Shown here: one piece after another, positions 12,630 through 58,552 of the stretch
Layout: every line of letters begins with the position of its first letter
Position numbering within the stretch: the first letter of the stretch is position 1
Virus record (IMG/VR): IMGVR_UViG_3300032214_000715
Span: 124,001 to 188,000 of that record
DNA length: 64,000 bases
Strand: one strand, 5' to 3'
Notes under the pieces: generated by a model
The model's database searches: none
What the model was told of the DNA's origin: nothing
What the model saw: only the letters and a program-made list of their open reading frames with translations
Made by a program: the position numbers and the translations under genes

Positions 12630-12640
12630 AATGGCTTTTA

Positions 12641-13744: not shown

Positions 13745-13772
13745 TTTTGGCTCCTTTTTTGATGATGAAAGA

Positions 13773-13801
13773 ATTATAAAAGAAAGACGATTTATTGTCA
13801 A
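13773..13801 (-). promoter_or_regulatory. Early promoter, perfect sigma70 consensus
   Basis: TTGACA-N17-TATAAT. Confidence 0.9.
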
Positions 13802-13806
13802 ACAAA

Positions 13807-29200: not shown

Positions 29201-29488
29201 TCTTCCGTCGCTACCGCCTAGATATGAGCATATTATTTTTTCATTTACACTGGAAATTCCCGTGCTACTGGGTCTTATCCAGCATTCAATTGTATAACTT
29301 ACTCCGCTAAGATTTAAATTAGTATCAGCAGTGTTTACCCATAATTCGCCGCCGGCGTCAAATTTCACGCTATTAAAATTTTGCGGTATTACTAATTCTG
29401 TAGTGCCAACAGTGTTAATTACATCGCCGACGAAAAACTCAGTTTCGGATACGTAATTTCCACTGGATGCCATTAATATTCCACTCAT
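23264..29488 (-). CDS. Giant adhesin with 7 LamG/concanavalin-like domains and Gly-rich domains
   Basis: Repeated FxGxxxYL...DFTIExW...WxH.A..R...GYISNLR..KG.A.Y..NFTP units; polyglycine tracts. Confidence 0.85.
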   Translation of the reverse strand: MSGILMASSGNYVSETEFFVGDVINTVGTTELVIPQNFNSVKFDAGGELWVNTADTNLNLSGVSYTIECWIRPSSTGISSVNEKIICSYLGGSDGRTQYSLYLLNGLLTAKLHTGNGNYTTITSTVKLSADIWVHVALTYTAPTTRLYMGGQLIASSNTAISTTNSTKFVIGGNSTATGFFDGHISNLRVVKNGNVLPTASSFTPMGQSLTYAPYIIYPHTGERSENPITSILTCQGSAGEQTFIDNSGNNLTINKSSSGVTATVLSPFINTTTNNGSSYFFSSGYVDVVSGSVSNYTFNLEANDFTIELWMYTDASPSSGMILIDTRTGNSNGYVLNTNSNRTITLNRWGATILTSSERINLSCWNHIAAVRSGNEIRIYVNGVSSNNTTGITGTTTFTVPGSILRIGQKLWASSGVGNFVGYISDVRILKGTALYVSNFTPPTTRLQPINNTILLTLQTPWRPVDNSVTNAIVQAYNTVRSDVFSPTSSAAFYRNWSTYFNGNGDYLTIPTNAAFSFDTGDFTIECWVYLNTKTGYPVFAMLGDGVDATPTQRLCAWSLYFDGGANQLVFARYTPTYAGLTFSWNPSLNQWYHVCLTRGGTSLRAFVNGTQIGTTQSNNTNYTAVNSTSLHVGRFIANGGVSFFLNGYISNLRIVKGTAVYTSNFTPSSSPLTAITNTALLTCQNGYPVDVSSNKFSITINSNPLPVQFSPFNVETTSTVDVDYVIVGGGGGGGSGVAGGGGGGGGVITGSTTVTPGTKIINVGAGGLVGENGKASIIHLSPYYGASFVGSNSYLSVPTNSAFGFGTGDFTIEFWAKWDGKLPTSAVNGGTFIDLRAAVGAESTAIFLSTGGALQYYNGPANLVYGSTAFTTNVWNHVALTRQSGVWRIFLNGIEATGTHTSASDLGTTKPVLIGQGINGSTTSFSGLISSLRIIKGTALYTANFVPSGGRLSTINNTVLLTAQELTAIPQPVNYSILFNGSSYLSIPKGPAHEFGSTPFTVEGWINAPNVSTVQGILGNFQSVAGGGWRVVLSSGYISYYQTGGGQAYSNTTILPNTWNHFAVVGDGSTIRMFLNGILGEVTCNQLSTITSQGHLVIGLNPDTLVWLFNGYMSNIRIVKGTALYSANSANFIPPISALTTIENTTLLTCSGTSIIDSSTNNLALTVNGSATVDVNTPYGTETQRWSTYFDGAGDYMSTGSNTAFNFGTGDFTVEFWVNSADVSSATQRGILQTSTTNGGLMTSYGTGITVIQGLSRTLSNLTGSLIVNVAGTWVGPTIAVMTANTWNHVAIARVSGTATLYINGTSVDSRVAAEDITATNIAIGGYYSTSYLFRGYLSNLRVVKSTAVYTANFTPSTTPLSATVNTTLLTCQGALFVDNSTNNLSFTARADVRPILSSPFTSTAVTTQSRSVFFDGTGDYLSTSNSTAFNFGTGDFTVEGWVYLTTTENRGIFQLSGNSIGLNASASNTIGLYVDNVAGAPYSVYWAGTAANTGATAVINVWTHFALIRRSGRTTVYINGVPAASRIDTTNYSCTGVAIGGYYSTSYLLKGYISNFRVVKGRALYIDSIAPTSSLTAIANTTLLTANAEQIVDGSNNNLTITKVSNPTVVTVGPFGSATPDPFLDGSITNATITTVGPVSKVLTSPTFEAYGGGSGGNWLAYNSATSGLSGASGGGAVGYYMPTGIGYGATSPGAGFSTQGNSGGTATPWSACYVHRGAGGGGAGAVGGNTLSCSAGDGGLGRLVSFTNKYYGGGGGGGVSSDNGYSATVGLNGLGGIGGGGNGHRNTVPAVAATNGQANTGGGGGGGGGLGGSGTVIIRYKSKITDTVFDKPGTYYYVVPDGVYNVSVVCVGAGSGRGLAVKAGDSTFGTTEVIGYGANGTVGGSYVGTGGANGGNGGDTYTVLTVLRGGSGGGAAGYRGNGGVGLNPIITTPLGGLGVGIYGIGSTSGNAVADGGGGGGGGSSPFTQNGYGSWGGSFGTQYWTNSFGGLFGGGAGGYFASTPAAGGGGGGLGWKNNIVVTPGQIIPIVVGNGIKNYNAGGGGAWGAVRVISGSGRSFPDASGPSIQSSN

Positions 29489-43362: not shown

Positions 43363-46047
43363 TTAATAATTTTGCCCAGCGACAAATCCGTACCAGGTAG
43401 TTCCGCCATCGTGAGTTACTAAGTTAAGAATATCAGTTTTACTGCCTGTAGTTGTTAATGTAGGAGCAGTTCCACTAGGCCATTTAACTGCTGCTGGCCA
43501 AGTAATTGTTCTACTACCAGTAGCATCCTGATTTAAGAATAATGTCATGTTATACGCACGACCAGCTACTGGTACATTACTGAATGCTAGAGTAGTAATA
43601 CTAGCATTCATAGTAACGTTAAATATGTTGCCTGCTGAGCAATCTATTGTTGTACTTGACGCTGATGTTACATTGGTACGAGTTTCAGTGTAGTTAGTTC
43701 CGAATGTCGTTGAACCACTAACTGTTAGACTACTTAATGTACCTACGCTTGTTAGTGAACTACTGACAACATTACTTGCTAGAGTTGTTCCAGTTAGTGT
43801 TCCGGCGTCACTAGAACCACCGCCAGAGACTGCTGCCCAAGTAGGAACTCCACCAACAACTGTTAGCACTTGATTGGTAGTACCAATAGCTAATTTGCTT
43901 AGTGTATTTGAGTCACTAGCATATAGTAAGTCACCAGTAGTCCAAGTAGATTGTGCGGTACCACCGTTAGTAGCAGCAAGAGTTCCGGATAGAGTAATTG
44001 TACCGCTACTTGTTATTGGGCCATCACTAGTAGTTAAACCAGTTGTTCCGCCACTGACAGCGACGGATGTAACTCTGGACATTGTTTGCCAGGTAGGAGC
44101 AGCATTTCCGTTACTTGTCAATACTTGTCCGCTAGTACCAACGTCAGAACCAGTTGATCCTACGCTCCAAGCTCCACTGGAGGTAATTCTTAATCTTTCT
44201 ACTAGTGAGGTAGAGTTAGAATATGTCTGTATAGCAACATATCCAGGGAAACTGCCGGCGCTGCCGCCGTTTAGAATAACATTACCGCCTGTTGTAACAC
44301 CGCCGCCACTTGATGTGCCACCCTGTAACGTTACATCTCCGGCAGTTGAGTTTGTTAGACTTTGTGTTCCGCCCACAATAACAATATTTCCGGGGAAAGG
44401 AGTAGGAGTGGATACAGATGAATTTCCAGTAATTGTGGTGGTAGCTGCCGCATAGGTAGCTCCAACGGCTCCAATACTTATACTAGTTACTCCGCTTAGT
44501 AAGCTGTTTATTGCGACACTAGCGGTTGTACCTCCAGTACCACCAGCAGCGATGGGTAGAGTTCCAGCAGTAATAGCACTAGCACTGGTTGAATATAATG
44601 CTCTGTTAGCTGCTCCAAAAGTAGATAATCCTGTGCCACCAACTGATGTTGGAACGGCACTGATGATATCAGTTCCAGCGACTTCGCCCTGCATGTTAAA
44701 AGTCGTTACTGAAGCTCCGATTCCAGAGTTAGTTCCAGGAATATAGTAATTTCCGCCACGAACATATACCGCTCCAGCAGATCCATTTACTGCCTTTCCA
44801 GTTCCAGCGACTACATTATAGGTAACGGCAGTAGCTATTACTGTGGCGCCGGCGGCGATATTAATACCGTTTCCATTGGCTTTAGTGGTAGTGACGGCAC
44901 TGTAACCTAAGCTAACGGTTCCGGTGGCAACATTTATTACATTGGTGGCACTAGTGGTTGCTATTTGAACTAAACTTAGTGTAATAGTACCAGATAGATT
45001 CACTGCGTTAGTTGTGCTACCTGAGCTTAGTGTCATATAACTAATAATACAGTTAGTTGTATTAGTGACATTTAACGTCACTGCTGTTCCAACTGTTGTA
45101 ATATCTGTGTTATACAAACGAATTCTGTTTCCACCGCTAGCGGTGCTAGTAGTTGTAAATCCAGCGCCGGAATCGCTGTACAGATAGCAATTATTCACAT
45201 CTAAACTACATTGTACTGTTCCAGCTAGAGTTAGTGCAGATGAAGCTCCTCCTGTAATAAACAGATTATTTAAACTGATATTAGTCTGAAAAATGCCCTG
45301 ATATGACTGTGTAGGTTCAACCGTTACAGAGCCATTTAAGAATGTACTTTTTAATTTGCCCTCAGCGCCAAACAAATGCGTGGTTGCTCGGTTTATAGTA
45401 ATGTTTTCTGCGTAGTTTCCTGGACCTATGAATATAGCTATGTGCGTGGCACTGCTGACAGTTACTGGGTATTGAGTATTTGCGTAACTTAGTGCTGCCC
45501 CGATGGTCAAGAATGGTTTCGAAATAGAGCCATCAGCGTTGCTATCATTACCGCCCTTAGTTACATACAAGCGATTAGCGATGTCTACTGTACTCCAGCT
45601 AGCACTGGTTCCATTGGTAACTAACACTTTACCATTATTATTAGCTTGACTTGGTAAAGAATCTAGAGTAGCCCAACTAGTATCTGTGCCGTCAGTAGTT
45701 AAAAATTTTCCAGTATTTCCGGTTTGACTTGGAGCAAGTGCGTTGAACGCAGAGTTTGCGGTGGTCTGTCCGGTTCCGCCGTTTGTAACCGCTAGTGTGC
45801 CAGCAAGTGTAATTGTACCGCTATCAGTGACTGGCCCACCCGTCGCTGATAATCCCGTTGTACCTCCACTAATATCTACACTAGTTACAGTGCCAGAATT
45901 TTGTCCTCCTATTACTATTCCACCGGCAGTGCTGCCGTCTCCAACATATAGTCGTTGAGTGTCTGTAGTAAATATTAATTCTCCCGCTGCTGGAGTTATA
46001 TTTGTTCTATTTGCTGCTAAGCCTCTTCTTAATTGTAATGATGGCAT
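43363..46047 (-). CDS. Fibre/spike protein: Mtd_N-like N-terminus, beta-helix-like middle, C-terminus ending GFVAGQNY
   Basis: LQLRRG...PAAGEL...LYVGDG; YVTKGGNDSNADGSISKPFLTIGAA...IFIGPGNYAE resembles a beta-helix cap. Confidence 0.8.
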   Translation of the reverse strand: MPSLQLRRGLAANRTNITPAAGELIFTTDTQRLYVGDGSTAGGIVIGGQNSGTVTSVDISGGTTGLSATGGPVTDSGTITLAGTLAVTNGGTGQTTANSAFNALAPSQTGNTGKFLTTDGTDTSWATLDSLPSQANNNGKVLVTNGTSASWSTVDIANRLYVTKGGNDSNADGSISKPFLTIGAALSYANTQYPVTVSSATHIAIFIGPGNYAENITINRATTHLFGAEGKLKSTFLNGSVTVEPTQSYQGIFQTNISLNNLFITGGASSALTLAGTVQCSLDVNNCYLYSDSGAGFTTTSTASGGNRIRLYNTDITTVGTAVTLNVTNTTNCIISYMTLSSGSTTNAVNLSGTITLSLVQIATTSATNVINVATGTVSLGYSAVTTTKANGNGINIAAGATVIATAVTYNVVAGTGKAVNGSAGAVYVRGGNYYIPGTNSGIGASVTTFNMQGEVAGTDIISAVPTSVGGTGLSTFGAANRALYSTSASAITAGTLPIAAGGTGGTTASVAINSLLSGVTSISIGAVGATYAAATTTITGNSSVSTPTPFPGNIVIVGGTQSLTNSTAGDVTLQGGTSSGGGVTTGGNVILNGGSAGSFPGYVAIQTYSNSTSLVERLRITSSGAWSVGSTGSDVGTSGQVLTSNGNAAPTWQTMSRVTSVAVSGGTTGLTTSDGPITSSGTITLSGTLAATNGGTAQSTWTTGDLLYASDSNTLSKLAIGTTNQVLTVVGGVPTWAAVSGGGSSDAGTLTGTTLASNVVSSSLTSVGTLSSLTVSGSTTFGTNYTETRTNVTSASSTTIDCSAGNIFNVTMNASITTLAFSNVPVAGRAYNMTLFLNQDATGSRTITWPAAVKWPSGTAPTLTTTGSKTDILNLVTHDGGTTWYGFVAGQNY

Positions 46048-46060
46048 TGTGTTCTCCTAA

Positions 46061-47293
46061 TTAAAATGTTCCCATATCTAAATAAAAACCAGCGGGCTGT
46101 TCAAAAGTACCAAAATCAAGACCTCCGGCAGTAGCAATTGCGGCCCAAGTCAATACTCCTGCTCCGTCGGTCGTTAAATATTTTCCATTATTACCAGTTT
46201 GCGATGGTAATAAATTAGCGGCTGCTTCTGCTGCGCTTGTAGCTCCAGTACCACCATTTGCTACAGCTACTGTTCCTGTTACATTTGCTGCGCTACCTGA
46301 TATGTTTCCACTTATATCTTCACCACTAACTGTAGCGCTACTACTTAACTCTGTGCCGTCACTCTTAAGATACCCGGAGCTAAAGCTTGTCTTACCAGTA
46401 CCGCCGTTAGCTACTGCTAATGTTCCGTCAAGTGTTATTGTTCCGCTATCAGTAATTGGTCCACCAGTAGTAGTAAGTCCTGTAGTACCGCCGCTAATAT
46501 CAATACTAGTGACAGTTCCATTTGTAGTAGTGATTGTAGTCCAAGTAGGAGAACTACCATTTCCATTACTAGTCAATACTTGACCGCTTGTTCCATAATT
46601 TGCTCCACTTAATCCCCAAGCGCCAGATGAAGTGAATCTAACTCTCTCTGTTTGTGAACTGCCAGTTGTTATTATTACTGATCCAACTCCATCCGGGCCG
46701 ACACCACTCTGTAAATATACATTACCACCAGTACCATTGTTAATTCCACCTGGTCCGCCTCTTAGATATACATGCCCTGGGCTACCCCCTGAAATTGGAT
46801 TACCAGAGATACCTCCAACGATAACTATACTAGCCCCAGAATTAGCACTACTTGCGGCGCCGGCACCAGAGATAGTAAATGTAGTATCACTTGATCCTAT
46901 AGTTAAAGTAGATCCGCTATAACTAATACTACTGGTGGCAGAGTAAGCGCCGCTACTATTAAATAGTATTTGCCCATTGCTACCAGGAACACTGGTTAAT
47001 CCAGTTCCACCCTGCGCTACGCTCAATGCGGTTGTTAATCCGCTAAGACTTGTTATGTCACTGTTGGACCCGCTTTTTGCTGCTCCGATGTTGACTAGAA
47101 TATCTTCAATAGTGGTTGATCCAGTACCGCCATATTCTATAGCAAGAACGCCTTTTGTAATGTTGCTAGCATTTTCACTAAAGTTTTTAGTAGCAGCATC
47201 TTGAAGATTTACTGGCTCACCAACATTAATAATCGGAGCATCCGATAGGCTAATGCCAGTTGTTGTAACGAATGGAATTTGAACACTACTCAT
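46061..47293 (-). CDS. Fibre protein ending LDFGTF...LDMGTF
   Basis: GGTG repeats; closely similar to part of 14753..16483; late promoter at 47316-47322. Confidence 0.8.
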   Translation of the reverse strand: MSSVQIPFVTTTGISLSDAPIINVGEPVNLQDAATKNFSENASNITKGVLAIEYGGTGSTTIEDILVNIGAAKSGSNSDITSLSGLTTALSVAQGGTGLTSVPGSNGQILFNSSGAYSATSSISYSGSTLTIGSSDTTFTISGAGAASSANSGASIVIVGGISGNPISGGSPGHVYLRGGPGGINNGTGGNVYLQSGVGPDGVGSVIITTGSSQTERVRFTSSGAWGLSGANYGTSGQVLTSNGNGSSPTWTTITTTNGTVTSIDISGGTTGLTTTGGPITDSGTITLDGTLAVANGGTGKTSFSSGYLKSDGTELSSSATVSGEDISGNISGSAANVTGTVAVANGGTGATSAAEAAANLLPSQTGNNGKYLTTDGAGVLTWAAIATAGGLDFGTFEQPAGFYLDMGTF

Positions 47294-47326
47294 ATATTTT
47301 CCTTGTCCATACTAGTATTTATGTTA

Positions 47327-48316
47327 TTACACAACAATACAAGTGCGGATAGCACGAATAGTAGTTACTGAGTTAGTGGGTGTTACTCTTAGTTGAAGAT
47401 TTCCAGACACATAATTGGCATCAAACGATGCTATTGTTGAGCCTGTTGCTATCATAGCAAACTCTGTATAGTAAGCGGTGGATCCATCGTGCGTGACTAA
47501 CAACTCACTGGTTTGATATGAGCTTCCGCTAGTTACTTGAATTACATATTTCACTGTTCTATAAACAGAGCCGTCAACGCTATCAACTATTTGATCGCTG
47601 TTCGTGTTGGTCGTAATTAAGGTAACAGTTGAAATAGTACCTTGATTGATGTTTAATGTTCCGACAGATAAATTATCTGTGCCAGGATTATATTTTAGTC
47701 CACTAGCAGTGTTTATTGCCTGTGCGGTACTAGTATTGCTAGAAACAAACGGAATATAGTAATTGCTGTTAGTAGTGACAGAGCCGGTATTGGCCAATGT
47801 AGATGCTGCCCCTACAGATCCAGTAATATCTGCTGCATCTATAGTTCCGGTACTGCTTAGTGCTGTACCATTGCTCTTTAAATATCCACTAGTGAATGAT
47901 GTTACTCCAGTACCGCCCTGCGCGACACTCAGTGCTGTAGTTAATCCGCTTAAGCTAGTAATGTCGCTATTAGCACCGCTCTTAGCGGCGCTTAAATTAG
48001 TTCTTGCTTCGGTAGCATCAGTCGCTCCAGTGCCGCCCTTAGCTACAGAAACTGTATTAAGACTCAGTGATATTGTTCCGCTTTGAGTAATCGGACTGTC
48101 TGTTACAGACAACGCTCCGTCAGTAGAAGAAATGGCTACACTGGTTACGGTACCGCTAGTGTTATTTCCTGTTAATTCGCCTACAGTGTTATCACTTTTT
48201 TTGTAGAATAATTTTCCGTCTGTATAGTTTATGGCTAGTTCGCCATAGTCTAAATCTTGCGCCTGTGGCATTTTTCCAGACACAGACGATCTTTTTAATT
48301 TAATGTTGCTGCTCAT
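47327..48316 (-). CDS. Short fibre protein with Mtd_N-like N-terminus
   Basis: IKLKRSS...LDYGELAINYTDGKLFY; one AKSGANSDITSL unit; late promoter at 48369-48375. Confidence 0.8.
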   Translation of the reverse strand: MSSNIKLKRSSVSGKMPQAQDLDYGELAINYTDGKLFYKKSDNTVGELTGNNTSGTVTSVAISSTDGALSVTDSPITQSGTISLSLNTVSVAKGGTGATDATEARTNLSAAKSGANSDITSLSGLTTALSVAQGGTGVTSFTSGYLKSNGTALSSTGTIDAADITGSVGAASTLANTGSVTTNSNYYIPFVSSNTSTAQAINTASGLKYNPGTDNLSVGTLNINQGTISTVTLITTNTNSDQIVDSVDGSVYRTVKYVIQVTSGSSYQTSELLVTHDGSTAYYTEFAMIATGSTIASFDANYVSGNLQLRVTPTNSVTTIRAIRTCIVV

Positions 48317-48411
48317 TTTTGTCCTAATAAGGTAAGAGGTGTTGAAGAATAAAAATTCTTCATAACATTATTTATCTATGAAAAACAAAACACAATAATA
48401 ATTTATATACA

Positions 48412-48439
48412 AAAAAAGCGCGACTAGTCGCGCTTTTTT
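48412..48439. terminator. Intrinsic terminator (perfect 28-bp palindrome)
   Basis: AAAAAAGCGCGACTAGTCGCGCTTTTTT. Confidence 0.85.
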
Positions 48440-48458
48440 GATCAATATCTCACTACAA

Positions 48459-49958
48459 TCAAGTAGTAATAGGAGAGAATGATGATATTGATGCGTTTCC
48501 GTAAGTGGTAATAGCAAAATTATTATCACTGCGATCAATAAATGTCCCATCACGGAAAGTCAACAATGATGTGTTTGATACCACAGCCAGTGCTGATGTG
48601 GACGGGGTAAAGTTACTCGTATAGAGAGCTGTTCCCTTTACTATACGAAGATTGGAAATGTATCCGTTCATCCAGTAACTGGCTCCGCCGCCAGCTATAA
48701 ATCTACCAACTGTTAGTGGTGTAGAGTTTACAGCGGTGTAGTTAACCCCATTAGAAAGTGTAGTTCCTAGTTGAGTGCCGTTAACGAATGCTCTGAGACT
48801 TGTTCCACTTCTAGATATGACAATGTGATACCATTGATTGGCCGTTGGAGTCCAAGCCCACGTTGCTCCTGAAAACCCAGGAGTATATCTATTAAGATTG
48901 AGACCTCCGTCACCCAAGTACATAGCCCAAGAACACAAGCGTTGAACAGGAACGGCGTCTATACCATCTCCTAACATAGCTAGCATTTGATAGCCGCCAG
49001 TACTTCTGAAGTACGCCCAGCACTCAATAGTAAAGTCTCCTGTACCAAAGGCAAACGCAGAATTAGAGGGTACAGTTAAATAGTCTCCATTTCCATCAAA
49101 GAAAGCACTGTGTGAGCCACTTGGGCTGACAGTTATCATATTTGTTTTTACTTCAGTGTCAGATCCTCCAGAATTGGTTGCTATTAGCTTAACGCTATAT
49201 GTTCCTGAAGTATTATATGTCGTGGTTGGATTCTGTGCTGTACTGTCAGTAGTTCCGTCATCGTTGAAATCCCACGCCCAGCTAGAAGGACTATTTGTTG
49301 ATGTATCAGTAAAAGTAACAGTTAGCGGAGCAGTGCCGGACGTTAAATTCGCAGAAAAGTCGGCTACTGGAGCTGACTGTGCGACTGTTATCAAATTTAG
49401 CTTAATTACTTGACCTGATCCACCTGAATTTGTTGCTGTCAATTTGGCACTGTATGTTCCAGGAGTGCTATAAGAGTATGATGGACTTTGAACAGTGCTG
49501 TCAGTAGTTCCGTCATTATTGAAGTCCCATGCCCAGGATGTCGGTGAATTGGTTGAAGTGTCAGTAAAGTTTACTGTTAGTGGGGCCGGCCCGGATACAG
49601 TATCGGTGGAGAAGTCAGCGACCGGAACTGGTTGAGTGACAGTTATGACGCTGGTTTTTACTACTTCGCCAGAGCCACTTGAGTTTGTTGCTACTAGCTT
49701 AACAGTATATGTACCAGGTGTATTGTATGTGGTACTTGGATTTTGAACGGTGCTGTCAACAAACCCATTATTGTTGAAGTCCCACGCCCACTCAGTGGGT
49801 GAGTTGGTGGATGTATCAGTAAAGTTTACTGTTAGTGGAGCAGTTCCAGATACTACGTTAGTAGAGAAATCAGCCACTGGCGGCACAATGGTGGCCGCCG
49901 CTCTACTTCCACTAGTTCTGCCGCTGATGAAAACGTTTCTAAAAGATAGTTGTCCCAT
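48459..49958 (-). CDS. Adhesin with 3 PKD domains and 1 LamG domain
   Basis: Three PVADFS...GxAPLTVxFTDTS..P..WAWDF...PGTY.VKL units, then a LamG-like domain; late promoter at 49999-50005. Confidence 0.88.
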   Translation of the reverse strand: MGQLSFRNVFISGRTSGSRAAATIVPPVADFSTNVVSGTAPLTVNFTDTSTNSPTEWAWDFNNNGFVDSTVQNPSTTYNTPGTYTVKLVATNSSGSGEVVKTSVITVTQPVPVADFSTDTVSGPAPLTVNFTDTSTNSPTSWAWDFNNDGTTDSTVQSPSYSYSTPGTYSAKLTATNSGGSGQVIKLNLITVAQSAPVADFSANLTSGTAPLTVTFTDTSTNSPSSWAWDFNDDGTTDSTAQNPTTTYNTSGTYSVKLIATNSGGSDTEVKTNMITVSPSGSHSAFFDGNGDYLTVPSNSAFAFGTGDFTIECWAYFRSTGGYQMLAMLGDGIDAVPVQRLCSWAMYLGDGGLNLNRYTPGFSGATWAWTPTANQWYHIVISRSGTSLRAFVNGTQLGTTLSNGVNYTAVNSTPLTVGRFIAGGGASYWMNGYISNLRIVKGTALYTSNFTPSTSALAVVSNTSLLTFRDGTFIDRSDNNFAITTYGNASISSFSPITT

Positions 49959-50009
49959 AATATTATTTTCCTAACTTGTGTTTAAAAGATGTTGATGATA
50001 TTTATGAAA

Positions 50010-50042
50010 AAAATAGAGAAATTTATTAAATTTCTCTATTTT
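50010..50042. terminator. AT-rich hairpin / terminator
   Basis: AAAATAGAGAAATTT-ATT-AAATTTCTCTATTTT. Confidence 0.7.
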
Positions 50043-50074
50043 GTACAGTACATTACTACATTGTAAGCACTGAA

Positions 50075-51841
50075 TTAATAAACACCTCCATCCAAGTCGG
50101 CATTTTGTACCCAGTTTGCTGTTACTAAATCATTATCAGCAAGATTGGTAGAGTACTGAGCCGGTGTTGGACCGCTTATTGAAACCTTAGATGTTGTTCC
50201 AGCAGGTAGAACCATACTAATACCGTTAGTAGTAGATTCTAGAATCAACCCGGCATCACCGCGAATAGTCATAGTATCGCCGGCTGCTGACTCAACTATG
50301 CCGTCACCGTCAGAATCAAAAATGATGCTGTTGGTAGAAAGAGTTACTGAACCAGTACCATTTGGAGCGATGACAATATCAGCGTTCGCTGTTGAAGTAC
50401 TGAGTGTAACTGTTCCATCATTACCAGTGGCTAGTGTTGCTCCGCCTACGGTTAGAGTCTCAGTTCCAGAATTCCAACTTAGACCAGAATCAGTAGTAAC
50501 TGGATCTGTTCCAGAACCAATTAGTAGATTTCCAGCAGTAAATGTAGTTGCTCCAGTACCACCATTGCTGACTGGTAGTGTACCTGTAACTGTATCAGTG
50601 TCTAGCTCAACTGATCCAGCTGCCATCTTGACAGCGGTTACAGCACCATCAGCAATCTTACTGGTTGTAACGGCACTGTTTGTTAGTGTTACTGCTAAGT
50701 CAACATTTCCAGAACCATTGAATGAAACAGCGCTAGCAGTAGTAACATCACCAGATACACTGAAGTCACGAGCAGTTTCAAGTGTAGTAGCAGTGTCAGC
50801 ATTACCAGTTAGATCACCAGTTATGTTAGCTTCAACTTGCTTGTTGAATGCCCACTTGTCTCCCGAAGAAACATAAGTTAGTGTAGCACCAGCACCAGCA
50901 ACTGTTAGACCGGCTCCATTTGCCTGAGCAGCAGTAGTTGCGTCCTTAGCTAGAGTTAGATTGATGTCACTGATAGCAACAGCGGTTGAATTTACAGTTG
51001 TTGTGGTGCCTTGTACTGTTAAATCACCAGTAATTACGGCGTTACCAGTTACAGTAACACTAGCAGCAGTAATATCGTCTGAACTTAGTGTTCCATTTAC
51101 GGTTACATTGTTGAATGTTACGTTGTCGGTTGTGCCGACTGACTGACCGATAGCTACTACGCCGTCAGTGATTGATACGCCTGTACCACCACTGAAGTGA
51201 GCACGAACTTCACTAGCGCTTGGGCCAGTGTAGGTGAATACGCCAGTAGCAGAGTCGTATGAGAATGAACCATCACCGCCAGCATCTGTAGCGCTGAATA
51301 GACTTCTTACAGAAGATGTATCAGTTGTAGCAGCGATTGTTAATGTACCAGCTACATCATCGTATGTCTTGGTGATGTTTGAACCAGCTACGATTAAATC
51401 AGCAACACGGTCGTCTACACGCTCGTTTGTGAAATATAGATTTGTTGTGCCTTCAGAAACACTGTCTGTACCGAAACTAATATTTGAAGTTCCGTCAAAG
51501 CTTTCGCCGTTGATTGTACGAGCGGTTTCTAGAGCGGTTGCTGTACTAGCATTGCCGGTCAAAGCACCGACAAAACTTGAAGCTGATACTGTGCCTAAAC
51601 CAGATATTCCATTGCTGGAATCCAGAATAACTGCCTTACTAGCAGTAGCTGTGCCTGCTGTAACTTTTAGTAGGTCAGCGTAATATGCTCCGCCGACTTC
51701 AGAAATGGTAACAGCAGTTCCGTCCGTGCTACTACCGAAATATAATTTACCAGAGCCAGATGAATATGCTAACTCACCGAACGCTAGATTGGTTGGGACG
51801 GCACTCCCAGTAGAACGTTTGATTTTAATTGTTGATGCCAC
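50075..51841 (-). CDS. Fibre protein (Mtd_N-like N-terminus, ends LDGGVY); paralogue of 51970..53796
   Basis: GTG start with AAGGAG; TIKIKRSTG...FGELAY; EGxxNLYFT; late promoter at 51899-51905. Confidence 0.85.
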   Translation of the reverse strand: MASTIKIKRSTGSAVPTNLAFGELAYSSGSGKLYFGSSTDGTAVTISEVGGAYYADLLKVTAGTATASKAVILDSSNGISGLGTVSASSFVGALTGNASTATALETARTINGESFDGTSNISFGTDSVSEGTTNLYFTNERVDDRVADLIVAGSNITKTYDDVAGTLTIAATTDTSSVRSLFSATDAGGDGSFSYDSATGVFTYTGPSASEVRAHFSGGTGVSITDGVVAIGQSVGTTDNVTFNNVTVNGTLSSDDITAASVTVTGNAVITGDLTVQGTTTTVNSTAVAISDINLTLAKDATTAAQANGAGLTVAGAGATLTYVSSGDKWAFNKQVEANITGDLTGNADTATTLETARDFSVSGDVTTASAVSFNGSGNVDLAVTLTNSAVTTSKIADGAVTAVKMAAGSVELDTDTVTGTLPVSNGGTGATTFTAGNLLIGSGTDPVTTDSGLSWNSGTETLTVGGATLATGNDGTVTLSTSTANADIVIAPNGTGSVTLSTNSIIFDSDGDGIVESAAGDTMTIRGDAGLILESTTNGISMVLPAGTTSKVSISGPTPAQYSTNLADNDLVTANWVQNADLDGGVY

Positions 51842-51914
51842 GAATAATCTCCTTAATTTAGTCTAGCAAAGTTGCTAGATAGTCTATAGTCCTAGATATA
51901 TTTATCCAATCAAG

Positions 51915-51947
51915 AAAAAAGAGAGAATTAATTTCTTAATTCTCTCT
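51915..51947 (-). terminator. AT-rich hairpin / terminator
   Basis: AGAGAGAATTAA-TTTC-TTAATTCTCTCT next to an A-run (T-run on the minus strand). Confidence 0.7.
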
Positions 51948-51969
51948 CGTTCTATTCACTCACGAGTGA

Positions 51970-53796
51970 TTAGTATGTACCGCCATCTAGTAGATCAGGA
52001 TCGATAGATACTACGCCGTCAACTACGTCAAAGTGATTTGCGTTGTAGCTGGCAACACCCTTTGTACCTGTGTCGGTTGCTACGGCAACACTTACGGTTA
52101 CTTCGTTAGCAGTAACGGCAGTGCTGATAGCGCCTGTTCCGGAAATCGCTAGAGACTCGCCTAGAGCAACAGCGTCAGAACCAGAACCACCAGTTAGAGT
52201 GATTGAACTGTTAGCTAGCTTAGCGTTGGTAACAGCACCGTCAGCGATCTTGGCAGTTGTAACTGCGTCAGCAGCGATCTTGGCTTCTGTTACAGCGGCA
52301 GCAGCTAGTTCAGCAGTGTCAACTCCAGCAGCCTTGATGGCTACGGCGCCAGCGGTTACAGCGAAATTGCCAGAAGCGAAGCTAGCAACACCCTGAACGG
52401 TGTCAGAAGCTACATCAACACTTACGGTTACTGTGTTAGCAGTAACGGCAGCACTGATAGCGCCAGAACCAGCGAATGTTAGAGTTTCAGTAGCTAAGTC
52501 TACTGTGTCTGTGCCACTGTCACCAGCGATATCTAGTGAGGTGGTGATAGAAGCGGTTGTAACTGATGTTACACGACCCTTAGCGTCAACTGTTACTACT
52601 GGAATTTCTGAAGAAGAACCGTAGGCACCAGCTGTTACGCCAGAGTTTGCTAGTGTTAGAACTAGGTCAACGTTACCTGTGCCATCAAATGATACGGCAG
52701 AAGCAGTAGCATCGCCGCTAGCACTGAAGTCACGAGCTGTTTCTAGAGCAGTTGCTGTGTCAGCGTTACCAGTTAGATCACCAGTTACGTTAGCTTCTAC
52801 TTGCTTGTTGAATACCCACTTGTCGCCAGCTGAAGCGTATGTCAATGTGGCTGAAGCACCAGCTACTGTTAGACCAGCGCCGTTAGCTTGAGCAGCAGTG
52901 GTAGCGTCTTTAGCTAGAGTGAGGTTGATGTCACTGATAGCAACAGCAGTTGAGTTAACTGTTGTGGTTGTACCCTGTACAGTTAGGTCGCCTGTGATTA
53001 CAGCGTTACCAGTTACGGTTACGTTGGTAGCGGTGATGTCGTCAGAACTTAGTGTTCCGTCAACTGTTACGTTGTTGAATGTAACGTTGTCGGTTGTACC
53101 AACAGCCTGACCGATGGAAACTTGACCGTCGGTGATTGATACGCCTGTACCAGCACTGAAGTGAGCGCGAACTTCACTAGCGCTTGGGCCGGTGTAAGTT
53201 AGAACGCCAGTTACGTTGTCGTAAGATAGTGAGCCGTCACCGCCAGCGTCTGTTACGCTGATTGAATCACGAGCGCGAGTTTCTGTGAAGTATAGATTGG
53301 TAGAGCCTTCAGCGATGTCGTCTGTGGTTAGATCAGCAGCGATGTCGCCTGTGTCTAAAGAGAAAACGCCAGTAGCGCTGTCGTATGTTAGAGCACCTGA
53401 TGGATCGCTAGCACTTACTGAACCACGAGCACGAGCTTGTGTGAAGTATTGATTGGTTGCGCCTTCTGCTAGAGCATCGGTGTCATGATTGCTGATGTCA
53501 CTAACTTGACCAGTTAGATCGCCAACGAACTCGGTAGCAGTAACAGTGGCTAGATTGCCAATATTACGACTAGCGTCAACGACAAGAGACTTGCTGGCAG
53601 CAGCAGTACCTGGGGTAGCTGTTAGTAGATCAGCATAGTAAGCGCCACCGACTTCGGTGATGTTTACGGTAGTACCGTTTGTGCTACTACCAAAATATAG
53701 CTTGCCTGAGCCAGATGAATATGCTAACTCACCAAAAGCTAGATTGGTTGGGGCTGCTGAGCCCGTTGAACGTTTGATTTTGATTGTATTTGCCAC
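51970..53796 (-). CDS. Putative major (abundant) fibre subunit (Mtd_N-like N-terminus, ends LDGGTY)
   Basis: GTG start with AGGAG; perfect TATAAATA at 53866-53873; strong GAC/AAC/ATC/TTC/GCT/GGT codon preference. Confidence 0.85.
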   Translation of the reverse strand: MANTIKIKRSTGSAAPTNLAFGELAYSSGSGKLYFGSSTNGTTVNITEVGGAYYADLLTATPGTAAASKSLVVDASRNIGNLATVTATEFVGDLTGQVSDISNHDTDALAEGATNQYFTQARARGSVSASDPSGALTYDSATGVFSLDTGDIAADLTTDDIAEGSTNLYFTETRARDSISVTDAGGDGSLSYDNVTGVLTYTGPSASEVRAHFSAGTGVSITDGQVSIGQAVGTTDNVTFNNVTVDGTLSSDDITATNVTVTGNAVITGDLTVQGTTTTVNSTAVAISDINLTLAKDATTAAQANGAGLTVAGASATLTYASAGDKWVFNKQVEANVTGDLTGNADTATALETARDFSASGDATASAVSFDGTGNVDLVLTLANSGVTAGAYGSSSEIPVVTVDAKGRVTSVTTASITTSLDIAGDSGTDTVDLATETLTFAGSGAISAAVTANTVTVSVDVASDTVQGVASFASGNFAVTAGAVAIKAAGVDTAELAAAAVTEAKIAADAVTTAKIADGAVTNAKLANSSITLTGGSGSDAVALGESLAISGTGAISTAVTANEVTVSVAVATDTGTKGVASYNANHFDVVDGVVSIDPDLLDGGTY

Positions 53797-53865
53797 TTTG
53801 TTTTTCTCCTAGGTTAAAGTGTATTATGTATCTTAGTATGGGTACTACGAAAGTACTCATACATA

Positions 53866-53873
53866 TATTTATA
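53866..53873 (-). promoter_or_regulatory. T4-type late promoter, full consensus TATAAATA
   Basis: Exact T4 gp55-dependent consensus, followed by a 5' leader hairpin (53836-53862). Confidence 0.8.
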
Positions 53874-53910
53874 CAAGACGTTTATTTTTTGAATAAAAAC
53901 TTGTATTTCC

Positions 53911-54372
53911 TTAAAATGCGCCGCCGTCTAACTCAGAAGACGCATCCCATTTTCCAGTAACACTATTGTACTTCAATAGTGCGTCCTGAGCAATTGGGTC
54001 GGCGGCATTTACATCTCCTATGTCTGATAATTTATCAATCTTTGCGCTGACGGTAAATTTAGTCCAATTTTCTTCCGCATTTGGCATTTCACCCGTGATG
54101 GAATCACGACTTTGCCCTGAAAGAAGAGAGTATTTATAGTATGAATCACCAGTTCTGGTGAACCCGCCCGCAGTGTATTCAGTTTTTACATAGACCAACA
54201 TACCCTCAGTTAATCGTTGACCTGTGATATTGGTTAATCTATTTCCAAATGATCCAGTGACGCTTTGTAACGAGCCACGAATTTCCGTATCCAGTACGAT
54301 TGGATGATTGCCAGTAGGGCTCCAAGTACCAGTCCAAGTGTTTCTTGTTAAACCATCGTAATTTGTGCTCAT
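53911..54372 (-). CDS. Small fibre adaptor protein ending LDGGAF
   Basis: ATGA-coupled to the upstream gene; RLTEGMLVYV and LSDIGDV...LKY...W motifs. Confidence 0.75.
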   Translation of the reverse strand: MSTNYDGLTRNTWTGTWSPTGNHPIVLDTEIRGSLQSVTGSFGNRLTNITGQRLTEGMLVYVKTEYTAGGFTRTGDSYYKYSLLSGQSRDSITGEMPNAEENWTKFTVSAKIDKLSDIGDVNAADPIAQDALLKYNSVTGKWDASSELDGGAF

Positions 54373-57300
54373 GATATACTCACATATGTTGTTCCAGGCT
54401 GTAAGGTTATTCCATACAGCGTGTATCCTTCAGCAACATATCCTGCTGGCGGCGTAGTTGGTTGTAAACTAACAGTGTTTCCAGTTGTCACGCTTACATC
54501 AGATAACAACGACGATGTTGGACCAGTTTTGAATGATGTTGGCTGACTAGCACTAGTGCGAACGGCGAACCAAAATGCTCTTGGAGTGCTTTCAGTATTG
54601 TTTACATTCCCGGCAAATACTTTAACTTGACTTCCAAGCGCGGTGACTCCCGCGGCAAAAGCAGTTTCGTTTACTATGTTAGAAGCTGTTGGTGGAACAC
54701 TTGTAGCTGTAGTAAATAGCCAGAAACTAGGGTATGTAAATGTAGCACTGGCGCTAGCGGTAGTAGCACTTAGATTTGCCGTGTACGAAGTTCCAGTGAC
54801 GCTTGCTGGTCGTGTAAATGTGGTAGAAACACTTACAGTTCTTGTTGTCGCCGTGTTATTTTTGTGTATAGGATCAGTAAATGTAAATGTTCCACTTGCT
54901 GTAGCACTACTTGTAGTACCACCCACTGCTGTAACACTATTAGCATAATTTGAAGTACTTGACATTCCAGTTACAGTAACTGTATATGCCACTGAATTGT
55001 AACTCTGTAAGAATGTGTTGCCAGTTAAACTGGAAAGTGCTACTCCAAGAGTAGGTGTCGCCCAGTTTACTGATATACTAGCCGTAGAGGTCATGTACTC
55101 AGCGGTACTAGTTCCATTATAGAAATTGAATGCTATTGTCCCAGCGGCATTTCCACCTGCTATTGTAGTACTTGTTGGTCTGATAAATGAATCGGCGTCT
55201 GTAGTAAACGTCTGAGTCCAATCTACAGTTCCTGCTGGAGTGGCAGATTGTACTCCAGCACTAAATGTATTCAATGCGCTTATTGAACCGCTTGTAGCAG
55301 TTATACTTCTAACGGCGGAAATATATTGATCAGTAATGTCATCTGGATTTACAACACTTACAGCAAATGATGTAATTGGTTGATCCCAGCTTGGAGATGC
55401 GGGAGATATAGTAGCACTGATTGTTGGTGTAAATGTGGCCAGTGTTAAACGAAGCTTGTTTCCAAAGAATTCAGCCACGCGAACTGGTGATGTGGACCCA
55501 TTCTCTTGGTATCCAGTAAGAGTTCTATAAGAGCCACTAGTAGTAAATACCAGCGGGCCAGATTGCTCAGATATACTAGTCCAACTAACATTTCCAGCAC
55601 CGTCTGTACTCAATACTTGTCCACTGGTTCCTCCACCAATGCTTATATTGTCTGTGCTTTCAAATGCTACTTTATCGGCAGTGGCAGTTACACCAGAAAC
55701 GCCGGCAAAAGACCCATTGTTGTTATATTGTAGCTGCCCGTCAGTTCCACCAGGAATTCCAGCCGCGTCATCAACTGGAATCCACTTATCCATTACTGAG
55801 TTATAACCCAGTAACTGTCCATCGGTTGGTGGAACTGTAGTCAAGTCAACATTAACTAAATCATCAAGACTTCCAGTTGTAGCTACTGTGGCAAAATCTG
55901 GCTTGTCGGTGATGTTATTCCACGTTAGTGAAGTTGTTGTAATGTATCCAGCGGCGTTCCCAAAGATACCAACATCTGGAACGGTGCCGTTAAGATTTTC
56001 CCAAGTGAAGTTTGATTGAGTTACATACTGCGCGTCGTTCGTGAATTCACTTACGTTTGTTGGGCGATTAATTACGTTTTCCCACGTTATATCAGTTTTT
56101 AACGCATAATTTATATCGTTTTGAAAGTAACTAAGACCAGTTGGAGTACCGCTAATAGAACTCCATGCTAATTCTGAAAATTTTACAAATCCAACATCAT
56201 TTGTAAAGTCACTTACTTTAGTTGGAGCATTAGTCAAGTCTGTGTAGTTTCCACCGAATGGAGCTGCTACACTTATAGTTCCATCCTCGGCGACTGTAAC
56301 GTTATCACCTATCTTAACTCCACCCAAAATAGTGCTAGTTGCTACCGCTATTGGGGTAGTATTTGACCAAGATACGTCACTACCGTCAGTAATTAAAACT
56401 TTGTTTGCGTTTCCGTTCTGACTTGGTAATAGCGCTGCTCGTGCTGCCGCTGGGGTTTCTGCTCCTGTGCCGCCGCTCTCTACTGGTAGTACGCCGCTAA
56501 ATCCAACTGTTATGTTTCCAGTTGATCCAGTAATTGATATGTTTTGTCCAGCAGTAGCAGATAAAACTCCGGTATTGCTGATAGTATTTTCTACTATACT
56601 GATTCCGTTGCCAGCAATGTAGTTACCTACGGATCCAAACTGAGACCACTCTATAGCACTTGTTCCCAGAGATATAGTTCCGGGAGTAATCATAATCCAT
56701 TGAGTGCCAGCTAATGTAGTTCCATTCTGTATAAATGTGAAATCACCAGCAGACACTTCACCAGCAAAGCTGTTATCAAAATCAGTGGCTCGCATCAGTA
56801 CCCAATTTGGGTTATTAGCTGATAGCACATATATGCCGTTTTGTTTCTTGTCGGTTTGATTCTTAAGTAAGATTCTATCGCCAACTATTAATGTGTGACC
56901 ATCTAGTTGTGTAAGTTGTCCTACGCCAGTTAGGGTTGCTCCTATACCGTTTGATCCATTGTTATAAGTTCCGTTTAGATTAGCGGTAGAAGCAACCGCA
57001 CAAGCAAGGTGTACGTTAAGACCACTAGCTAAATTATCTACGTATTGTTTTGTGGCAGCATCTAACGCACTTACTGGGTCCGCGTGTAGCGTTAGTGTGC
57101 CCTGCATAGTGTCGCCGGCTCGATTTACAGGAGTATATCCAAGACCACTGATTACATCAGACCCGCTGAACGCTTTCCAAACTATATTAGTTCCATCAGT
57201 TGATAGTACTCGACCAGAAAATGATGCCTGCGACGGCAATAAATTATTAATAGCATCAGTTGGATTACTTGCCCCAGTACCGCCGTTAAATACTCCTAAA

Positions 57301-57569
57301 GTTCCGCCTACTGTAAATGTGCCAGAAGTCGTTATTGGGTTTCCGTCTCCAGTAGTAAAGGTTAGTCCGGTACCACCCGGATCAATATTTACAGACTTTA
57401 CCGAACCAAAATCAGGGTTAGCGTTAAAATATTTAATAGTAGAGGTGCCGTCTTTATAAAACAGACGACCGTCAGCATAGTTAATCGCAATTTCACCAAA
57501 CGATAAGTCAGATATTAATGGACTTGTTCCAGTCGTACCCGAATTTTTAATAATAATCGTTGTTGCCAT
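54369..57569 (-). CDS. Fibre protein (1066 aa) with Mtd_N-like N-terminus
   Basis: TIIIKNS...FGEIAINYADGRLFY; DAATKQYVD...GDRILLKNQ; repeated W..I...P..VS.F.ND units. Confidence 0.8.
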   Translation of the reverse strand: MATTIIIKNSGTTGTSPLISDLSFGEIAINYADGRLFYKDGTSTIKYFNANPDFGSVKSVNIDPGGTGLTFTTGDGNPITTSGTFTVGGTLGVFNGGTGASNPTDAINNLLPSQASFSGRVLSTDGTNIVWKAFSGSDVISGLGYTPVNRAGDTMQGTLTLHADPVSALDAATKQYVDNLASGLNVHLACAVASTANLNGTYNNGSNGIGATLTGVGQLTQLDGHTLIVGDRILLKNQTDKKQNGIYVLSANNPNWVLMRATDFDNSFAGEVSAGDFTFIQNGTTLAGTQWIMITPGTISLGTSAIEWSQFGSVGNYIAGNGISIVENTISNTGVLSATAGQNISITGSTGNITVGFSGVLPVESGGTGAETPAAARAALLPSQNGNANKVLITDGSDVSWSNTTPIAVATSTILGGVKIGDNVTVAEDGTISVAAPFGGNYTDLTNAPTKVSDFTNDVGFVKFSELAWSSISGTPTGLSYFQNDINYALKTDITWENVINRPTNVSEFTNDAQYVTQSNFTWENLNGTVPDVGIFGNAAGYITTTSLTWNNITDKPDFATVATTGSLDDLVNVDLTTVPPTDGQLLGYNSVMDKWIPVDDAAGIPGGTDGQLQYNNNGSFAGVSGVTATADKVAFESTDNISIGGGTSGQVLSTDGAGNVSWTSISEQSGPLVFTTSGSYRTLTGYQENGSTSPVRVAEFFGNKLRLTLATFTPTISATISPASPSWDQPITSFAVSVVNPDDITDQYISAVRSITATSGSISALNTFSAGVQSATPAGTVDWTQTFTTDADSFIRPTSTTIAGGNAAGTIAFNFYNGTSTAEYMTSTASISVNWATPTLGVALSSLTGNTFLQSYNSVAYTVTVTGMSSTSNYANSVTAVGGTTSSATASGTFTFTDPIHKNNTATTRTVSVSTTFTRPASVTGTSYTANLSATTASASATFTYPSFWLFTTATSVPPTASNIVNETAFAAGVTALGSQVKVFAGNVNNTESTPRAFWFAVRTSASQPTSFKTGPTSSLLSDVSVTTGNTVSLQPTTPPAGYVAEGYTLYGITLQPGTTYVSIS

Positions 57570-57583
57570 TTATTTTTCCTTGT

Positions 57584-58552
57584 TTAACCGAAACTTCCGC
57601 CGTTTATTATGCCTACTAAATTGTCAACGTAATACTTGTTAACTAGATCGTTATCAGCTAGACCTTGTGAGTACAGTTGAGCAGTGGGGCCTTGTACTGT
57701 AACTTTATTAGCATTATTGTTGGGTAGTATCATTGTAGTGTCTCCTGACTGAGACTCCAAAAATAAATTAGATGTTCTGGCGCGCAGTGTTAGAGTTTCA
57801 CCTGAATTAGTCTGTATTACTGAATTTCCAGTTCCAGTTACAACTACACTTCCACTTCCATTTGGTAACAACACTAGATCAGAATTAGTTGCCGTGGCAG
57901 AAATACTTGAGTTGGCACCGTTTATTACAACTGGATAAGCTGATCCAACGCTCAGTGTGCTTTGTGTGTTATCAAAACTAAGTTTATCCGATTGAGCTAC
58001 TGCGTCTGTGCCGTTTCCGTACAGTATTTGATTTGGCATTAACTCAGTGAGTCCAGTACCGCCGCTACTTACTGGTACTGTATCAAGTGATATAGTAAGC
58101 GTGTCGCCGTTTAACTCAACCGTAATCGGGCTATCGCCAGTAGTAGTTACTGTTTTTCCAACAACCTTCCAGGCAGCTCCGTCATAGTATTCCGCTACAG
58201 GGCTGGATCCGCTAGTGTTAATTCTCAACATTCCAACTGTCGGGGACTCTGGTCGTTCTTCAGTAGTACCAACTGGTATACTTACGGCTGAGGTTCCATC
58301 AAATTTAACGACACCCTGTTGTTGTAAACTAACTGTAGTTCCAGCAAAGCTTAATTTCCCAGTGTCGGAAGATATATTTACGTCGGTGTCTAATGCGGTA
58401 ATAGACGAAGCCACCATTGGAATATGGGTGGATTCGTTTGTTGCTCTTACGCTAAAGGAATTAGTAATTACATCGTAATAAACTACGCCGCCATTTTTCC
58501 CGTACTGTACCGAGTTTGATGTTCCTGCTAATCCGTAATTTTTTGTAACCAT
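57584..58552 (-). CDS. Fibre/connector protein ending INGGSFG
   Basis: IPVGTTEERP...GMLRIN...EYYDG.W; C-terminal region paralogous to the end of 50075..51841; TATAAATA at 58572-58579. Confidence 0.75.
   Translation of the reverse strand: MVTKNYGLAGTSNSVQYGKNGGVVYYDVITNSFSVRATNESTHIPMVASSITALDTDVNISSDTGKLSFAGTTVSLQQQGVVKFDGTSAVSIPVGTTEERPESPTVGMLRINTSGSSPVAEYYDGAAWKVVGKTVTTTGDSPITVELNGDTLTISLDTVPVSSGGTGLTELMPNQILYGNGTDAVAQSDKLSFDNTQSTLSVGSAYPVVINGANSSISATATNSDLVLLPNGSGSVVVTGTGNSVIQTNSGETLTLRARTSNLFLESQSGDTTMILPNNNANKVTVQGPTAQLYSQGLADNDLVNKYYVDNLVGIINGGSFG

Follow-up and report, generated by a model that had tools for sequence, protein, structure and literature searches.

We analysed a 64,000-nt stretch of DNA (positions 124,001 to 188,000 of IMG/VR virus record IMGVR_UViG_3300032214_000715, hereafter the window), and found a cluster of tail-fibre genes marked by two terminal elements that may together form a connector: a short C-terminal peptide, here called the plug, and an N-terminal domain of about 50 residues, here called the socket. 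All plug and socket genes lie on the minus strand at 43363-58552. The plug was defined as hydrophobic-D-[G/F/Y/M]-G-x-[Y/F]-COOH, and the ends in the window fit [DN]-[GM]-G-x-[FY]; the socket begins at Met1 and follows h-x-h-[KR]-[KRN]-[SG]...P...L..GE[LI]...L[FY]. The genes of the cluster, named by their lower coordinate and given in the order of transcription, are listed below (aa, amino acids).

57584..58552, minus strand: 57584, plug-bearing fibre segment of 322 aa in a gp36-like position; plug INGGSFG at 57587-57607
54369..57569, minus strand: 54369, socket-bearing fibre of 1066 aa; socket in residues 1 to about 50 (57420-57569), IIIKNS...SFGEIAINYADGRLFYK
53911..54372, minus strand: 53911, small adaptor of 153 aa, made of a DGLTRNTWTGTW domain (residues 1 to about 108), a short hairpin and the plug LDGGAF (53914-53931)
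51970..53796, minus strand: 51970, fibre segment with both a socket (53647-53796, IKIKRSTGSA.PTNLAFGELAYSS) and the plug LDGGTY (51973-51990)
50075..51841, minus strand: 50075, tandem paralogue of 51970; socket at 51692-51841, plug LDGGVY at 50078-50095
48459..49958, minus strand: 48459, intervening protein of 499 aa with three PKD domains and one LamG domain, neither plug nor socket
47327..48316, minus strand: 47327, socket-bearing terminal protein of 329 aa; socket at 48167-48316, IKLKRSSVSGKMPQAQDLDYGELAINYTDGKLFYK; no plug, end IRAIRTCIVV
46061..47293, minus strand: 46061, plug-bearing fibre segment of 410 aa; duplicated end LDFGTF...LDMGTF at 46064-46120
43363..46047, minus strand: 43363, socket-bearing distal fibre of 894 aa; classical Mtd_N socket at 45898-46047, C-terminal tip domain phrog_9017 (7.9e-24)

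A scan of about 50 genes of the window counted five plugs and five sockets, no more, and placed all of them within 43.3-58.6 kb. The original prediction, made from the letters of the window, had named five C-terminal peptides, and these were present exactly as claimed: GIINGGSFG in 57584, SELDGGAF in 53911, DLLDGGTY in 51970, ADLDGGVY in 50075 and LDFGTFEQPAGFYLDMGTF in 46061. Internally, [DN]GG.[FY] was absent from the 12 fibre-region proteins (8,365 aa). NGGSFG and DMGTF are variants among the five ends and both recur, the former as NGGTFG in a related phage (L003), whose orthologue of 57584 ends INGGTFG. The latter belongs to the T4-gp36-like form D-[FYM]-G-x-[FY], for which gp36 of T4 (DFGYY), Yersinia TG1 (DFGAY), Acinetobacter ZZ1 (DYGTF) and Aeromonas PS49 (DFGTY) can be compared. 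The predicted related domain was also borne out at the head of five genes (54369, 51970, 50075, 47327 and 43363), whose N-termini align from Met1; the socket of 54369 matched the A1 hidden Markov model with E 1.9e-19, the 54369 sequence itself being part of the model building.

The gene order agreed with the prediction as well. A plug gene is directly followed by a socket gene in four cases, with gaps of 14, 114, 128 and 13 nt, and after the fifth plug gene, 50075, the PKD/LamG gene 48459 (Pfam PKD_4 1.9e-40 and Laminin_G_3 8e-17) comes before the socket gene 47327. L003 has the same gene arrangement, but a different gene of 376 aa occupies the slot of 48459. With spacers containing hairpins and T-runs on both of its flanks, 48459 looks like a cassette inserted between 50075 and 47327.

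The window derives from a marine T4-like myovirus, with a gp15-like tail-sheath stabiliser at 3686-5074, and its relatives in tblastn were cyanomyoviruses, Methylophilales phage Melnitz and similar phages. Two IMG/VR contigs (L001 and L002) showed 100%-identical matches to the 53911 protein together with the same flanking genes, and a near-identity DNA search of the isolate phage collection with the region gave no genome matches. The start of 53911 overlaps the stop of 54369 (ATGA). In most relatives the N-domain of 53911 heads fibres of 450-1395 aa without a plug and without a socket gene after them; where the short plug-ended version is present (the window, L003 and L008-10), a socket gene comes next.

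The C-terminal 45 or so residues of 57584 (57587-57730) and 50075 (50078-50220) share the pattern LP...KV.I.GPT.AQYS..LADNDLV..[YW]V......GG... T4 gp36 has the ADNDLxxKxYVD part of this pattern in its middle, and PHROG 13853 likewise links the ends of small adaptors. The plug may be part of a module of about 45 aa rather than a bare pentapeptide.

Coupling of plug and socket genes across phages

Through alignment of the 60-aa N-terminus we obtained more than 600 viral-contig matches and assessed the best 80 loci (socket-first set). In about 72 of these 80, the upstream open reading frame (ORF) ends in [IVLM]DGG[TSVA][YFW]-stop, 12-125 nt before the socket gene. Motif-ended ORFs had a socket gene within 300 nt in 71 of 73 cases and one ORF further in the other two (odds ratio 205, p 4e-47; this sample is biased towards sockets). 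A degenerate DNA pattern for IDGGTY-TAA gave 81 matches, of which 74 were evaluable (plug-first set); all 81 sit at the ends of ORFs of at least 60 aa, and a socket was found within 400 nt in 48 of the 74 (median 61 nt). The enrichment of plug-ended genes upstream of socket genes, which the original prediction had proposed as a check, was thus seen from both sides.

Both elements are strictly terminal. The motif DGG.[FYW] was found 73 times at C-termini and nine times internally in 216,461 aa, an enrichment of about 2,900-fold. The socket started at or before residue 40 in 188 of 190 matches. Among 22,181 cluster representatives (7,091 at E<=1e-10) from a library of 1.84 billion proteins, the 150 best matches included 148 with the socket at residue 1-2. 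The codons of the motif vary synonymously, which indicates that selection acts on the protein. The pair was also found in siphovirus S-CBS2, Colwellia 9A, a Zobellviridae Vibrio phage and the Ralstonia jumbo phage RsoM2USA.

Twenty of the 26 plug-first loci without a nearby socket belonged to one T7-like podovirus family. Here the socket gene lies 5-7.5 kb upstream of a small plug gene in 17 of 19 loci of at least 15 kb, and in four of those 17 the socket gene is directly preceded by a second, larger plug-bearing gene. Adjacency is therefore frequent and not obligatory, while co-occurrence holds. This arrangement looks like a split tail fibre with non-adjacent anchor and distal part. The small podovirus protein has 76 aa (MSNYTK.T.FA.KDSL...EFD..., end T[IV]DGGTY) and is encoded between a tail-tubular-B-like gene and Gly-rich internal-virion-like genes; the family comprises a subset of L224-L303 and L344-L422, for example L351:10001-10231 and L351:2581-4341.

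Many loci contained runs of three to five genes linked by plug and socket. In one pattern, a protein of 80-95 aa ending [E/N][S/G/A]G[QHEN][YF]-stop is followed by one of 450-990 aa, which starts MASIIRIKRS...GELAYS and ends IDGGTY, and then by a variable protein starting KKSSV...DLDYGELALNY.DGKLYYK. One series consists of proteins of 83, 869, 224 and 1107 aa (L075) and another of 212+, 221, 125, 907 and 180 aa (L008). Small adaptors of 76-160 aa carry little beyond an anchor or socket and a plug. In Vibrio phage 1.208.B (L148, MG592578), two paralogous plug proteins (INGGVY and IDGGAF) precede a pair of socket proteins, and the first of the pair has a plug of its own, IDGGSF; at L423:565-2139, the upstream genes end LSGGSF and SSGGTF before a socket with SLKAS.

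We also found natural fusions. Four proteins (P0001-P0004) contain two sockets, the internal one preceded by a remnant of the plug (TIDGE-DN, YIDGNE-PN, TISGN-SN or TIDAN-TS); the remnant lacks the aromatic end and stands 2-3 residues before the first strand of the internal socket. Plug and socket elements can therefore be contiguous in one chain, and only the split form has the aromatic residue and the free carboxylate. The fusions were absent from the fetched loci and came solely from the search of the 1.84 billion proteins, where the two-socket natural proteins listed are P0001-P0005.

The spacers between the window genes were also inspected. In those longer than 100 nt there are hairpins with T-runs and motifs resembling ATAAATA, which indicates separate expression of the segments. 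A TATAAATA motif stands at 53866-53873 in the 114-nt spacer upstream of 51970, and a terminator-like hairpin with a T-run at 51948-51919, downstream of 51970 in the spacer towards 50075. Exact TATAAATA was not enriched in the window (six found vs seven expected), and sigma-70 and terminator scans of the window stayed at background level. Translational coupling or read-through was rejected as an account of the pairs, considering gaps of -4 to 128 nt, intervening hairpins and T-runs, and varying codons. In L065-L144 the plug-socket spacers of 50-70 nt (e.g. L084:5938-5994) consist of a GC stem, the loop TTTTTA and a T-run, terminator-like, and then the palindrome CCTTTT(T)(T)AAGG before the ATG; this layout could combine attenuation with a start-site hairpin that controls expression of the distal module.

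A second type of junction was revealed between 54369 and 53911. A gene ending [LI][YW]G[IF]TLQPGxTYVxIx is followed by a gene starting M..(N)Y(D)GLTRNxWxGTW in 63 of 63 loci (L001-L063), at -4 to +8 nt. In the window its two halves are the C-end of 54369 (54369-54416), which reads YGITLQPGTTYVSIS at 54372-54416, and the N-domain of 53911 (54049-54372). In the AlphaFold2 (AF2) model of 53911 the highly conserved first 33 residues had low confidence, as expected of a partner-dependent segment.

Relationship of the socket to gp37 and Mtd

The long tail fibre of T4 is an end-to-end fibre of several proteins, gp34-35-36-37, arranged in gene order. The C-end of gp36 is reported to bind the N-end of gp37, both being trimers, and the whole fibre has no atomic structure (PMC9603124); the distal rod has been modelled at low resolution only (preprint 10.64898/2026.03.06.709160). 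T4 gp36 ends IKDSVQDFGYY-stop, 8 nt before gp37, and the same pair is found in TG1, ZZ1 and PS49. Comparison of the window socket class (A2, class K) with T4 gp37 residues 1-60 by hhalign gave 97.3% (E 2e-11), and class R (51970) matched the class K profile at 97.4%. In tblastn, 209 phage records had a gene annotated as "long tail fiber distal subunit" (gp37) whose N-terminus matched the first 60 aa of 47327, and PHROG families of the long tail fibre distal subunit matched residues 3-58 of 47327. The kind of joint is thus already known from T4, and the statement of the original prediction that it knew of no such case among phage appendages was wrong at the level of the joint (PMC9603124).

PF03903 (Phage_T4_gp36) matched none of 57584, 53911, 51970, 50075 and 46061; it covers gp36 residues 56-195, with the plug outside, and in Pfam the gp36 C-end and the gp37 N-end are both without a model. 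BLASTP of 57584 against T4 gp36 returned a 16-aa match to the ADNDLxxKxYVD motif only (E 0.06). Sequence searches of the PDB with A2, A4, gp36, the gp37 N-terminus and a 55-sequence socket profile found no gp36 or gp37 N-terminal chain and nothing relevant.

The sockets had been predicted to be Mtd_N-like. For 43363 this stood, since Pfam Mtd_N (PF18454) matched it at E 9e-14 with 51.5 bits vs a gathering threshold of 26.3. The 60-aa N-termini of 47327, 50075, 51970 and 54369 gave nothing in Pfam even at E<=10; these four are of the gp37-N type, and are linked to classical Mtd_N through profile-profile matches of their class profiles at 81.6% and 89.5%, collinear from Met1. In bacterial genomes, the ORF upstream of a classical Mtd_N gene ended D-[YLFWM]-G-x(2-5)-stop in 24 of 50 cases vs 11 of 503 other ORFs (p 5e-20), with examples such as DYGSIV, DLGSIA and DMGGLA, and Bbp9 of Bordetella phage BPP-1 ends ADLGGIA-stop just before mtd. 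From these profile matches the socket domain is assigned to the gp37-N/Mtd_N superfamily, and the joint of the window is predicted to be the same joint that links T4 gp36 to gp37.

Contact, assembly and alternative explanations

Among six pairs in which the second basic residue of the socket is missing (KN, KS, KY or KA), the plug lacked Asp/Glu in five (p 7e-5 to 1e-3, according to the way of counting lineages). These pairs are INGGSFG with IKNS in the window, that of L003, IKGGSF with LKNS (L135), IIGGSF with KTKYS (L085) and SSGGTF with SLKAS (L423). The covariation, seen in few lineages, hints at a contact between the Asp of the plug and a Lys/Arg of the socket. Mutual information between the last plug residue (Y/F) and the socket columns looked lineage-driven and was not used as evidence.

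In the AF2 model of 53911, the core (residues 35-108) reached a pLDDT of 85-92 and was followed by a hairpin (132-145), and the plug (146-153) stayed below 50 and unpacked. The plug is therefore not folded back on its own chain in this model, a possibility that had been raised as counting against docking. Foldseek gave no significant match for the 53911 model. The socket of 47327, modelled as a monomer, formed four strands with a pLDDT of 80.8.

Considering the near-deterministic pairing in unrelated phages, the terminal positions, the fusions and the T4 pair, we regard it as probable (about 0.8) that the window encodes a tail-fibre module whose presumably trimeric segments are joined end to end by a two-part connector, with the plug and the N-domain of the next protein as partners, as originally proposed. 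The contact would be direct and trimer on trimer. We infer a latch to which the plug would contribute its Asp, terminal carboxylate and aromatic residue, and the socket its dibasic start. The beta-strand addition of the original prediction, a donor-strand mechanism, stays a hypothesis.

The assembly would then run as follows. 57584, in the gp36-like position, would carry 54369, and the conserved end of 54369 would be joined to 53911 through the second junction (YGITLQPGxTYVSIS end before DGLTRNxWxGTW start). 53911 would carry 51970 and/or its paralogue 50075, either with 51970 holding 50075 or with both placed alternatively onto 53911. 51970 and/or 50075 would present their plugs to 47327, the step from 50075 to 47327 being presumed across the intervening gene. 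Separately, 46061 would carry 43363. The segments may form one long chain, alternative fibres or branches.

Several observations weigh against this reading. When the order of the nine cluster genes was shuffled, four or more plug-to-socket adjacencies appeared in 11.6% of cases (p=0.116). Moreover, 51970 and 50075 are tandem paralogues with 65% identity over about 420 aa, their sockets nearly identical and their C-terminal 180 or so residues different, so their adjacency is not independent evidence. The window alone is therefore not significant, and the comparison with other phages is decisive. In that comparison, adjacency failed in 35% of the plug-first loci (26/74), the socket gene of P-SSM2 has no plug gene upstream, about half of the classical Mtd_N genes in bacterial genomes have no recognisable upstream plug, and L148 has three plugs and two sockets at 3040-6546, so that strict one-to-one pairing in gene order is not required. 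The presumed podovirus pair (VDGGTY with TKNSS) breaks the Asp/basic covariation, and the plug proteins of the window have no detectable gp36 homology outside short motifs. The socket model had no significant neighbour in Foldseek, with Mtd (1YU0, whose residues 1-48 served as the beta-prism reference) outside the top 50; its best matches, none of them significant, were phage hyaluronidase tail fibres (the Mtd_N-related 6x3m, 2dp5 and 2c3f, E 0.6-1.5) and collagen XV/XVIII trimerisation domains.

The two ends could instead be kept mainly as module boundaries, for recombinational swapping of distal cassettes rather than for contact. The proteins downstream of the socket differ in length (81-2044 aa) and have C-ends of many unrelated kinds, which is the pattern expected of cassette exchange, and the anchor domain of 53911 heads many different fibres. 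We nevertheless hold boundary homology to be unlikely as the main cause, since synonymous variation and spacers differing in length and sequence leave only short DNA homology, both elements are conserved when 5-7 kb apart, the fusions keep a plug remnant beside the socket, and the T4 ends physically join (PMC9603124). Cassette exchange is likely a consequence of a standard connector, and as such compatible with docking rather than an alternative to it.

It is somewhat less likely still that the elements are independent caps, the peptide being the usual ending of a trimeric beta-fibre, the N-domain a trimerisation starter and their adjacency a product of gene clustering. The socket model does weakly resemble the collagen XV/XVIII NC1 trimerisation domains (TMq 0.46-0.50, not significant), the gene order in the window is not significant, and some plugs and sockets are unpaired. 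Yet the chain-ending proteins (54369, 47327, 43363 and most socket-downstream proteins) lack the peptide, the proteins bearing it are followed by a socket in 71/73 and 48/74, and tiny adaptors carry a plug without a fibre shaft; the fusions and the Asp/basic covariation likewise speak against separate caps. Least probable of all, and very unlikely, is that the peptide is an assembly tag, recognised by a chaperone or assembly factor or processed, and not bound by the next structural protein. T4 fibres do require the chaperones gp57A and gp38 (PMC9603124), but no conserved chaperone-like gene accompanied the pairs in the loci examined, where the co-occurring partner is the socket gene, and in the fusions the peptide continues directly into a socket.

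Beyond end-to-end joining in the window, we might speculate, at somewhat less than even odds, that tailed phages of every morphotype share one portable, non-covalent and sequence-defined connector made of the plug end and the gp37-N/Mtd_N domain, which would allow combinatorial fibres of separately encoded trimers and unify gp36-gp37 with Bbp9-Mtd. Its sub-types DGGxY/F, DFGxY/F and D-x-G-x-I/L-A would then be a pairing code, and a latch on the dibasic strand would replace the peptide bond of the fused forms.

Outside the cluster, a fibre-like protein of 576 aa (14753-16483, minus strand) has the same phrog_9017 tip as 43363 (end GFVAGQNY) and carries neither socket nor plug. Three giant structural proteins of 2074, 826 and 1758 aa (23264-29488, 29498-31978 and 38032-43308, minus strand) contain up to eight LamG-type repeats, which match the PHROG annotations "baseplate wedge subunit" and "virion structural protein"; 48459 has one such unit beside its three PKD domains. 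A GIY-YIG/NUMOD3 homing-endonuclease gene (7398-9121, minus strand) overlaps the end of thymidylate synthase, and near it, at 11261-13891 (minus strand), an AAA ATPase is paired with a DUF2201 metallopeptidase-like/VWA protein.

Significance and comparison with known systems

In the searched literature (motif strings, Mtd_N, the gp36-gp37 junction and T4 fibres) we found no description of a motif or sequence rule for the joint. New in the light of that literature are the sequence definition of the joint, the unification of gp36/gp37 with Bbp9/Mtd, its breadth, and its iterated use in one phage. The pairing recurs in thousands of phages, and sockets are found in over 22,000 protein clusters. 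Mtd-type proteins fall under the same rule, and in some phages repeated use of the joint gives chains of three to five gene products. The old structural question of how gp37 is held by gp36 becomes testable with short peptides and small domains. For annotation, many "hypothetical" proteins of 76-160 aa can be read as fibre adaptors, and socket-bearing ORFs as distal receptor-binding modules. A standard connector would also explain how distal modules are exchanged between phages without redesign of the attachment.

In chaperone-usher pili, an N-terminal extension is inserted into the monomeric subunit before it, whose incomplete Ig fold it fills, and a chaperone and an usher assist. The likeness is one of concept only: a terminal peptide completes or locks the next subunit and non-covalent chains result. 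Here, by contrast, the peptide is C-terminal, the partners are presumably trimers, and the socket model is a small four-stranded unit. It is not Ig-like, pilin matches were not found, and chaperone and usher genes are absent from the cluster (Pfam, PHROG). The "chain-like fibres" of phage A1002 were set aside as a different mechanism, in which dimers augment a rope protein.

Anchor-branch receptor-binding proteins (G7C gp63.1/gp66, CBA120 tailspikes, Klebsiella KP32-type) dock onto T4 gp10-like branching domains in a branched, side-by-side manner (PMC6872550). They resemble the present system in that separately encoded receptor-binding proteins are joined by conserved N-terminal adaptors and the distal parts are exchangeable. 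The joint described here differs in running from C-end to N-end, apparently collinear as the fusions suggest, and no gp10-like Pfam or PHROG match was found in ten fibre-cluster proteins.

The N-terminal beta-prism of Mtd is presumed to be attached to the tail fibre (PMC10743442). As in BPP-1, where a D-x-G-x-hydrophobic end lies upstream of mtd, the window contains a bona fide Mtd_N domain in 43363. Unlike in BPP-1, four of the five window sockets fall short of the Pfam model, and the window has neither a diversity-generating retroelement nor a C-type lectin tip; the BPP-1-type plug lacks the terminal aromatic residue.

T4 gp36/gp37 differs from the window in several respects: the plug proteins of the window lack PF03903, their commonest plug is DGGx[YF] in place of DFGx[YF], a single cluster uses the joint five times and includes proteins with both socket and plug, and gp35-like or gp38-like genes were not recognised. 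The two systems are alike in that gene order equals assembly order, in that only a few nucleotides separate the D-[FY]-G-x-[YF]-stop end of the upstream protein from the following gene, and in that the downstream protein begins with the same N-domain.

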